Assembly: GCA_964035545.1 (NCBI GenBank)
Contig: OZ037767.1
Span: 2,243,680 to 2,307,679 of the forward strand
From: Bugula neritina
Taxonomy: Eukaryota > Animalia > Bryozoa
Direction of reading: 5' to 3'
DNA: 64,000 nucleotides
The notes below the pieces were generated by a model. The model was not told the DNA's origin, did no database searches, and saw nothing but the letters and a program-made list of their open reading frames with translations. Position 1 is the stretch's first letter; the number at the start of each line of letters is the position of its first letter. Positions 12,101 through 17,441 of this stretch are shown piece by piece. The position numbers and the translations under genes are program-made.

Positions 12101-15100
12101 TGTAGTACAGTTTTGGGCCAATATACTCATTTTAGTATTGAAATTGAAAATTCTAGTAAAATTTCAACTTGATTTTTTTAAAAATTGCAATGATTTTTGC
12201 TTATTTTTTGAACATAACTCTTTGAAATTAAAGTGGTAGCCCTGAAATGGGTCATTGGGGTTATTAGATGCATCCTAATATTTTGTTGGCAACCCTTATT
12301 GTCCATCAAGCACAGCTCGACAGCGTTTTGGCATGCCAACAACTTCTGATTTTTTAAAATATTCTTGTAGAGAACATATTTAACTTTCCATTGATATGAA
12401 TATTACTCAATATCACCTTATAAATATTGAGCAAATTATCAATTACTAATAAATGATAAGTTTATTTTAGGCGGTCCCATAATTAAGATCACCACTGTAT
12501 AATATATTGGTCCATGCTCAGAGATAGGTCATGTGGTACTACTTTGCAGTCTGTAAGTTCAACTATTCATGTAATAAACTTGTGGTATACTTATAGGCTC
12601 TATTTCAATTTAGCTCACTTCTCTAGTTATTAGCTTGCAAATTGAGGTCAGAAATATTTCCTGTAATACCAGCCCAGAAAGTTTTCAAACATCCAACAGT
12701 TTAATTTATTAAAAATATAATGGATACAGTGACTAACCTACTTCTGGTTTACAGAAATAGAAAGGGCAATGATGGAGAAAAGCTCAAAAATCTCTATGCA
12801 TATAAAAAGTTTAGAAATTACTATGCACAGTTTGAAGACACTGAAGACATCAATGTCGCCTGCATTTGCTTCTCCTTTATCTCCGCTCCAGGACAAACTG
12901 AAAAAGTTGATGGAAAGTGCAGCTGAATTAAATGCTTTCCTTACCAGTATTGAAGAGATCAAAAATGATGTAAATATATTCACATGATTTGTTATTAACT
13001 TCCAATTAAAATTTTGCAAACCTGTTAAACGGAATGTTAATAAACTACTTGTCTCTCTTTGTTTCCAGTTGGTAGAAATTAATCCAGTAGACATTGTGAG
13101 CTTCTACAAATACACAATAGTGCCTCTTAAGGTGTTTGATATTCTGAAAGCATTTCTTCTCGTACTGCAGAAGGACCATCTCACTCTTCAGGTTTGCTAA
13201 GCATAAGGTTACCTTTGATATGTCACCATCAAATAATATCTTGATCTTTACCTTAATGCTACACCTTTTGTTTGTTAATTTTCTCATCTTTTCTTGACTA
13301 GATAAGTTGCATTAACAATAAATTTTTGTTTCTTTGTACTTGCAAAATTTGTCTGTTTTCTCTAGCGATGGTGGGATGTCCGGAATGAGGTGTCTGGCTA
13401 TAGCAGAGTGACAAACCTTTTGGCTCAGGCTAAAAAGTACTCACCAGTCGTATCAAACATGTTGAACATAATAGAGGCTAGATATCTGTGTGACCCATAT
13501 CTCAGTCTTATTAATGTAGATGAAGATAGCAGTAGTGAACAAATGACTCTCGCAGTCATTCTGAAATGGGTGAGTCATAGCATGGGTCATAGGTGAGTCG
13601 TGTGAAATGAGTCATCTTAGGAGAGACGTGGCATAGTCATAGGGGTCAGTCAAATGGCATAAGTCATTGATAAGTTGCGTGACATAAATCACTACTGAGT
13701 TATTGCAGGGTTATAAAAAGTGAGTTCATCATAATGCTAATTTGTTACATGCAGAGCTGATAGAATTATTTATTTTATACAGCGCTTGCTACACTAAAAG
13801 ATATTCTGTTTCAGTTAGTTTTCTAAAATCTTTTTTGAGACAATGTGTTTCCCATTGTAGCTAACCTTTTTGGTAGAACTTCAGGAATTGTTCAGATGTT
13901 ACTATACGTTGGTGGTATTTGTAGGTTTTGCTAATGATTAACGAATCAACTGTGCATTTCAAAGATAATGGTGGAGACTTGGAGAAAGCTTTGACGGAGT
14001 TTGAGGTGTGTTTTACTCTTTTCATTAGCCCCTTTCTCTCTGTAATAAACAGCAAAACATAAAAATTACTGCAACAGTTTGACTGACCTATTCTATTGCC
14101 CAACTTTTTCCAAGATTCTTGTAATCACCACTACATTCAAGTGAAGTGAGTATTTCTATTTGAATATGCTTATAGGATAGAAGACAAGAGAAAAGTGAGA
14201 AAGATCCCATAACAGAGATTAACTCAGATACAATAGTAAATGGGAAAGTAATAAACCCCACTGAACAGGCATTAGCTAATTCCTTGTTGAATGAATGTAG
14301 CTTCATGATCGGGGCTGGATGGACATCTGCCTACATCTCTAGATGGGTTAAAGGTGAGTGTTGATGATACAAAAACAGTAAATGGTCAGAGTGATGGAGT
14401 GCACTACTGGACTACAGGTTCTAGACTTTTATTCTCTGCATGGCAGATTACCTAATCAATTATCAACTAAAATAACTTTTGTAATAGTTGTTTTGTTCAA
14501 CCCTCAGCTGAAAAAAGTCTGATGAAACTTTTGTGCATATCCCAATAACTGTTTGTGTTATCCTAGCTATATTTTACTTTGTGTGTTATGCAGTGTTGAA
14601 TTGAAAGTAATTTGACTCTTTAAAAAACTAAAAGGTTTTAGAGTATAATTTGTAGCGTAGAAAAGTTACAGGTTTGCTTGTTTATTTTTACTTTAAATAG
14701 GTTTTAAATGCATAATTTCTTTGTTAAGCTGTTTGACATTTTGATTGCTAAACTTTTGTTGTCTGACTTAGATTACAGTTTAGCAGACGCCAAACTTTAT
14801 TTAAAACATTCCTTAAGACTGAGATCTAGTATAGAAGCGTGGACTCTGTACCAGAGATATGCTCCTCAGGAAGTTCTCTTGAAGGTATGTGGCAGCTTGC
14901 AACAGCTACCTTGCATGGATGTGACCAAAGTTGTATGCAGTGCATTTACGTTACTATATTACAGCATGGAAACATCATTGCATGTATTTATGTTACTATA
15001 TTACAGCATGGAAACATCATTGAGTGTACAGGTGTTGATCGGGCTAACAACCCAGCATTTGTCTGTCAGTTCGACAAAATAGATTTCAATGGTTTAGCAA

Positions 15101-17441: not shown

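Follow-up and report, generated by a model that had tools for sequence, protein, structure and literature searches.

The locus raises the question of whether the gene for CatSper-gamma, a canopy subunit of the sperm channel CatSper, runs on in Bugula neritina through a long cytoplasmic tail into a Sec14-GOLD module, and, if so, what such a module may do at the end of a channel subunit. The window, meaning the whole stretch of 64,000 nucleotides that was analysed (G000:C3:2243680-2307679), belongs to chromosome 3 of the B. neritina assembly tzBugNeri2.1 (PMC11480708), and the genome searched comprises 216.0 Mb in 321 contigs. Judged from the sequence, CatSper-gamma, tail and Sec14-GOLD module very probably form a single gene; what the module contributes to the channel can be addressed only with much lower confidence.

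Gene model and host subunit

Hand tracing combined with a script delineates 34 exons (B to AI) between 755 and 17441, which have AG/GT ends, compatible phases and stop-free frames; homologous exons continue about 5 kb upstream of the window, and such upstream exons are present in all four copies of the gene. The identity of the host subunit comes from the ectodomain. Specifically, exon 3218-3373 matches CATSPERG_C (PF22846) with E 3e-10 (40.7 bits, cut-off 27.6), two exons 5' of it match the CATSPERG Ig-like model PF22851 (E 2e-4 and 0.016), and the significant PDB matches are gamma 2 chains only, including residues 921-969 of the 1,145 of mouse CatSper gamma 2 (7EEB_F, E 6e-7). The beta-propeller model PF15064 has no match anywhere, the controls included, and is therefore uninformative, and matches to CatSper beta and delta are found on other chromosomes of the genome.

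As in mouse CATSPERG, the Ig-like and C-terminal ectodomain matches are followed by one transmembrane helix (Table 1), whose position and phases are identical in a second species (species B, see below). In the transmembrane-helix test just one other exon, 13069-13191, has a high value (1.74), and the dynein helices to which it aligns are soluble. Beyond the membrane the two proteins differ: mouse gamma 2 would end about 60 aa after its helix, as estimated by offset from residues 921-969, whereas about 1,330 aa lie downstream of the helix in B. neritina, within a full CatSper-gamma of about 2,400 aa, and the short cytoplasmic tail typical of CATSPERG thus appears to be absent here. Moreover, unlike mouse CATSPERG, the B. 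neritina gene is present in four copies.

Table 1. Features of the CatSper-gamma gene and its copies (window positions unless a contig is named)
Feature	Position	Strand	Evidence
CatSper-gamma ectodomain, C-terminal part (exons B-I)	755-4239	+	PF22846, PF22851 and 7EEB_F matches
Single transmembrane helix, intron-split (end of exon I 4143-4239, start of exon J 4321-4459)	4222-4372	+	hydrophobic stretch, then basic residues
Cytoplasmic helical region, exons K-X, about 740 aa	4539-12969	+	exon-versus-exon hhalign, helical model, dN/dS, species B
Candidate dynein microtubule-binding-domain-like segment (exons Y 13069-13191, Z 13366-13569, AA 13925-14005)	13069-14005	+	hhalign score of one exon
Charged linker and CRAL_TRIO_N-like helices (exons AB 14176-14353, AC 14772-14884)	14176-14884	+	RNA join, hhalign, shared intron
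Divergent CRAL-TRIO (Sec14) core (exons AD 15007-15174, AE 15323-15476, AF 15562-15776)	15007-15776	+	collinear hhalign, weak PF00650, RNA join
GOLD-like domain and stop (exons AG 16595-16707, AH 16854-17005, AI 17269-17441)	16595-17441	+	exon AH alignment, shared introns, RNA join
Second intact whole-gene copy, inverted, tail to tail (Sec14-GOLD module 22065-19004)	19004-38500	-	91-98% aa identity by region
Two further intact fused copies, in tandem	G000:C3:10536673-10587300 (L008-L013)	-	74-90% identical to the window copy by region

The Sec14-GOLD module

The first-pass annotation had described a complete CRAL_TRIO_N, CRAL-TRIO and GOLD module at the C-terminus of the subunit. The eight exons AB to AI have AG/GT ends, compatible phases and no internal stops, encode 421 aa and close with a TAA at 17439-17441. 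Completeness holds for exon content and order and not for the profile scores, since none of the module exons by itself reaches a Pfam cut-off and CRAL_TRIO_N remains unmatched.

Pfam and PDB were queried with exons taken singly or with open frames as they occur in the DNA, the joined translation served as local tblastn query against retrieved loci, and the hhalign references were the dynein and SEC14L genes of the same genome, each joined from its exons. The Pfam comparison proposed in the first pass, when run exon by exon, yields CRAL_TRIO_2 as its best match (E 0.12) and leaves CRAL_TRIO_N (PF03765) and GOLD unmatched, whereas the annotated 378-aa spliced product of the draft genome, which covers the same span and neighbours EB796_000979 on VXIV02000109.1, gives a weak match to PF00650 (E at most 0.001). 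Against the SEC14L profile of the genome, the top four of the 34 exons are AC, AD, AE and AF, collinear and with E 0.007, 0.002, 0.0003 and 0.04, respectively; exon AC aligns to SEC14L positions 5-38, and exon AE reaches z 4.4-8. Compared intron to intron with the SEC14L GOLD exon, exon AH ranks first among 20 exons with z of about 5 for one reference and has z 2.8 for a second; the GOLD exons AG and AI have no score, and the GOLD part is likewise without a local hhalign or Pfam score. Other single-exon PDB searches were unproductive, as was a homolog search with exon AD. Overall, a CRAL-TRIO domain is recognised in the module, with modest scores, and support decreases from the CRAL-TRIO core (modest) to GOLD (weaker) and CRAL_TRIO_N (weakest).

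The divergence remarked upon in the first pass is present: the core carries LPPSLYGT, and YIVH-G-DR replaces IN-A-PxxF. In Sec14p numbering (PMC12658205), with residues putatively mapped through the SEC14L genes of the genome, the equivalent of the phosphatidylinositol-binding R65 is kept as R or K, that of E207 is S or C, and those of T236 and K239 are absent, so that three of the four residues look lost, in keeping with the earlier caution that the ligand may be unusual or that binding may have been lost. The second of these options corresponds to a ligand-free pseudo-Sec14 that, together with GOLD, is kept just to cap the tail, either structurally or for contacts with other proteins. The altered binding positions, the loss of NAPxxF and of one glycine of LPxxxGG, and a Pfam score that is only weak all favour such a cap, but the module retains the hydrophobic patterns of the strands and helices, and the ligand of many Sec14 proteins is not phosphatidylinositol (PMC7462610, PMC10225987); we consider it possible but doubtful. 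A 42-bp tandem repeat at 14936-15026 duplicates the acceptor of the first core exon and has three units in copy 2; the RNA uses 15007.

Evidence for a single transcript

In an RNA-labelled run, which is a symbiont-metagenome library without tissue information, three contigs (depth 109) carry a GT..AG joint from 14005 to 14176, with 14006-14175 removed, and this joint is absent from a genomic-looking run. Further RNA joints connect exons X-Y, Y-Z, Z-AA, AC-AD (14884 to 15007) and AH-AI (17005 to 17269), and two RNA contigs carry exons Z and AB separated by a gap of the size of exon AA. The comparison covered one 6-kb stretch from exon X onward, and AB-AC, AD-AE, AE-AF, AF-AG and AG-AH are not among the joints shown. 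The fusion without an evident separate start exon, noted from the sequence in the first pass, is supported by the 14005 to 14176 splice, which makes AB an internal exon, and by the linkage kept in the four copies and in species B; the charged linker described there is also found, as EFE followed by DRRQEKSEKDP across 14005/14176. In one RNA contig, exon AA is preceded by some 32 additional bases (13893-14005), reflecting an alternative acceptor or partly spliced paralog RNA. Two other sequences considered as cDNA, P0017 and P0018, were rejected, both being genomic read-throughs. An assembly artefact is unlikely because all exons are also intact in a draft assembly made independently.

In the draft GenBank annotation the locus appears as several genes, with products of 212, 254 and 378 aa, which speaks for a short-tailed CatSper-gamma that ends soon after the membrane helix, the tail and the Sec14-GOLD module either being a gene of their own in tight linkage or being reached only by a minor read-through transcript. 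Such an arrangement would also accommodate RNA joints that cover exon X onward and not J to W, and the stop codons that are quickly met when reading into the introns after J or K. However, the annotation places its starts at Met codons that lie inside L, W and AB, and in two of the pieces the frame terminates only after reading on into an intron; the RNA shows AB to be internal, with all of it spliced to AA. Moreover, all donors, acceptors and phases from H to AB are kept in species B and in the four paralogs, and the introns measure only 79-918 nt. Separate genes are therefore very unlikely, and the single-gene reading corrects an annotation in which the gene is hidden as fragments.

The cytoplasmic tail

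Between the membrane helix and the module, exons M-V resemble one another (exon-versus-exon hhalign E 4e-5 to 8e-3) as helical repeats of about 45 aa, an annotated fragment of this region is modelled as all-helical, and the region is kept in species B. The segment that follows is reminiscent of the stalk head of dynein heavy chains (MTBD, Pfam MT PF12777). Exon Y is the best of the 34 exons against the dynein stalk heads of the genome (hhalign E 2e-4) and aligns to their first two helices, a conserved Trp follows the matched part, and the segment closes with a WV helix; exon Z aligns in register, with a score that is not significant. Unlike a dynein heavy chain, the B. neritina segment has no motor domain, finds no Pfam MT or PDB match with single-exon queries and is unscored in its second half, and a fold search with an AlphaFold model of exon Z alone found nothing. 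The likeness, carried by one exon, is a lead and not an established assignment, and microtubule contact is putative.

Gene copies, other species and origin of the module

The genome contains four CatSper-gamma loci that share exons, splice sites and open frames, and genome-wide the strong matches to the stalk-head and to the Sec14 exons number exactly four, all at these loci. With dN/dS values of 0.07-0.31 over ectodomain, tail and module (0.08-0.31 in the helical region, 0.09-0.25 in the module, mostly 0.1-0.3), the fused gene is under purifying selection in all four copies. The architecture extends to two other species, B and C, presumably bryozoans. One 18.2-kb contig of species B (42% GC) carries CATSPERG_C, the transmembrane helix, the tail and an AB-like exon marking the start of the module, with identical phases at each shared junction, conserved donors and acceptors from H to AB, and 20-78% identity per exon. 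In species C, exons Z to AD occur in order and with near-identical lengths, and the Sec14 core exon AD is the best conserved, with 57% identity versus 32-41% for its neighbours. No single foreign contig spans the whole gene, and the GOLD part is seen in Bugula only. A metagenome scan returned species B again, along with a bacterial match (L049) that was rejected as chance; another scan was empty.

Of the seven introns of the module, four (AB/AC, AE/AF, AG/AH and AH/AI) agree in codon position and phase with introns of the SEC14L2-like genes L004 and L006, the AB/AC intron being shared in both respects with L004; AD/AE is approximately shared, and two others are shifted by 4 and about 13 codons with respect to the reference genes. 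The shared introns therefore indicate the capture of a genomic, DNA-level SEC14L2-type copy, and retrotransposed capture was rejected for the same reason. The descent of the module from a SEC14L2-type gene is thus supported by sequence comparison: like the SEC14-GOLD proteins SEC14L2/3/4/6 (TAP/SPF), it has a collinear CRAL-TRIO part, a GOLD-like exon and the four introns identical to those of the two SEC14L2-like genes of the genome. Unlike them, it is fused to a membrane protein, is very divergent, and has altered phosphatidylinositol-binding positions and NAPxxF motif. The SEC14L2-type copy may have been recruited as terminal exons before the species split, and the whole fused gene would later have been duplicated to four copies in Bugula.

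Possible functions of the tail and module

For the role of this architecture, the reading that we prefer, tentatively and at somewhat less than even chances, is that the tail serves to place the channel within the flagellum. It would form a helical rod reaching from the membrane toward the axoneme, with a possible microtubule contact at the stalk-head-like segment, and the Sec14-GOLD end may dock on a membrane or partner while holding a hydrophobic ligand other than phosphatidylinositol; the module would be neither a canonical lipid-transfer protein nor a direct gate. An analogy is provided by PTPN9, which is localised by its CTN-SEC14 part, a SEC14 module that is appended to another protein and sets its localisation (PMC10225987), although in B. 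neritina the module is fused to a subunit of an ion channel and stands at its C-terminus.

The first-pass annotation had favoured lipid control of the channel, as an alternative to the ABHD2 route proposed for human sperm. That route is itself disputed, as a preprint reports that ABHD2 activity is not needed for progesterone action on human CatSper (bioRxiv 10.1101/2024.12.17.628646). In such a scheme, a lipid or steroid-like cue sensed or delivered by the Sec14 module would change CatSper opening, for instance during sperm activation near a conspecific colony. The strong constraint on the Sec14 core, most evident at exon AD in species C, is in line with this, and the sperm of spermcasters may stay inactive in dispersal and be activated near conspecifics (PMC6802076). 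Similarly, the ascidian attractant is a sulfated steroid, but it binds PMCA and not CatSper (PMC10652287). Furthermore, CatSper-gamma does not form the pore, some 900 residues, with the helical rod and the dynein-stalk-head-like segment among them, separate its membrane helix from the module, and the phosphatidylinositol-binding positions of the module are altered. Lipid gating of CatSper by the module is thus unsupported and unlikely, and we think it more probable that the module helps to position or anchor the channel. A combination in which bryozoan CatSper-gamma acts as both tether and sensor, with an axonemal microtubule link via a dynein-derived stalk head, a novel lipophilic ligand that controls sperm activation from within the Sec14 pocket, and four paralogs possibly tuned differently, is conceivable but appears more unlikely still.

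The cytosolic side of mammalian CatSper consists of separate small proteins, and the in situ map leaves part of it without assignment (PMC9205950); in B. neritina, a large and conserved apparatus on this side belongs to a single canopy subunit. This offers candidate parts for the arrangement of CatSper in rows along the flagellum and for a possible action of lipids on it via a dedicated binding domain, both domains being soluble, and it places Bryozoa among the phyla in which CatSper subunits occur. This conserved CatSper-gamma architecture is apparently undescribed: no paper on bryozoan CatSper was found in a search without most subscription journals, nor was any case of a SEC14 module on an ion-channel subunit, the listed papers that mention both CatSper and SEC14 being apparently unrelated omics studies.

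Other features of the window and the genome

The introns of the two window copies differ in their repeat content. A MITE-like element of about 350 bp with 71-bp inverted ends is doubled in an intron of copy 1 (10641-11345) and occurs once in copy 2, where it occupies another intron (21369-21722), and a 32-bp intronic minisatellite counts 26 units in copy 1 (6298-7129) and 5 in copy 2 (27698-27857). Another element, with 164-bp inverted ends, lies at 11926-12506; a contig of the genomic-looking run is without 565 bp of this element, which may hence be polymorphic or copy-specific.

Beyond the second copy, the minus strand carries a probable TPR-repeat gene at 40600-48100, recognised by eye (two exons scanned without a Pfam match), and an HYR-domain exon at 56192-56482 (E 6e-11). 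A Rab-family GTPase gene (Pfam Ras) is located on the plus strand at 49693-53983, with an N-terminus that we take to be Rab8-like. A frame of 1,703 aa on the minus strand at 58626-63734, encoding protease, reverse transcriptase, RNase H and integrase, corresponds to a Ty3/gypsy-type LTR retrotransposon with a GC content of about 59% versus 34% for the host. Lastly, six contigs of the assembly (C86, C125, C154, C188, C193 and C255) contain long Sec14 or dynein matches with only TAA and TAG in frame, which fits ciliate-code DNA left in the assembly.
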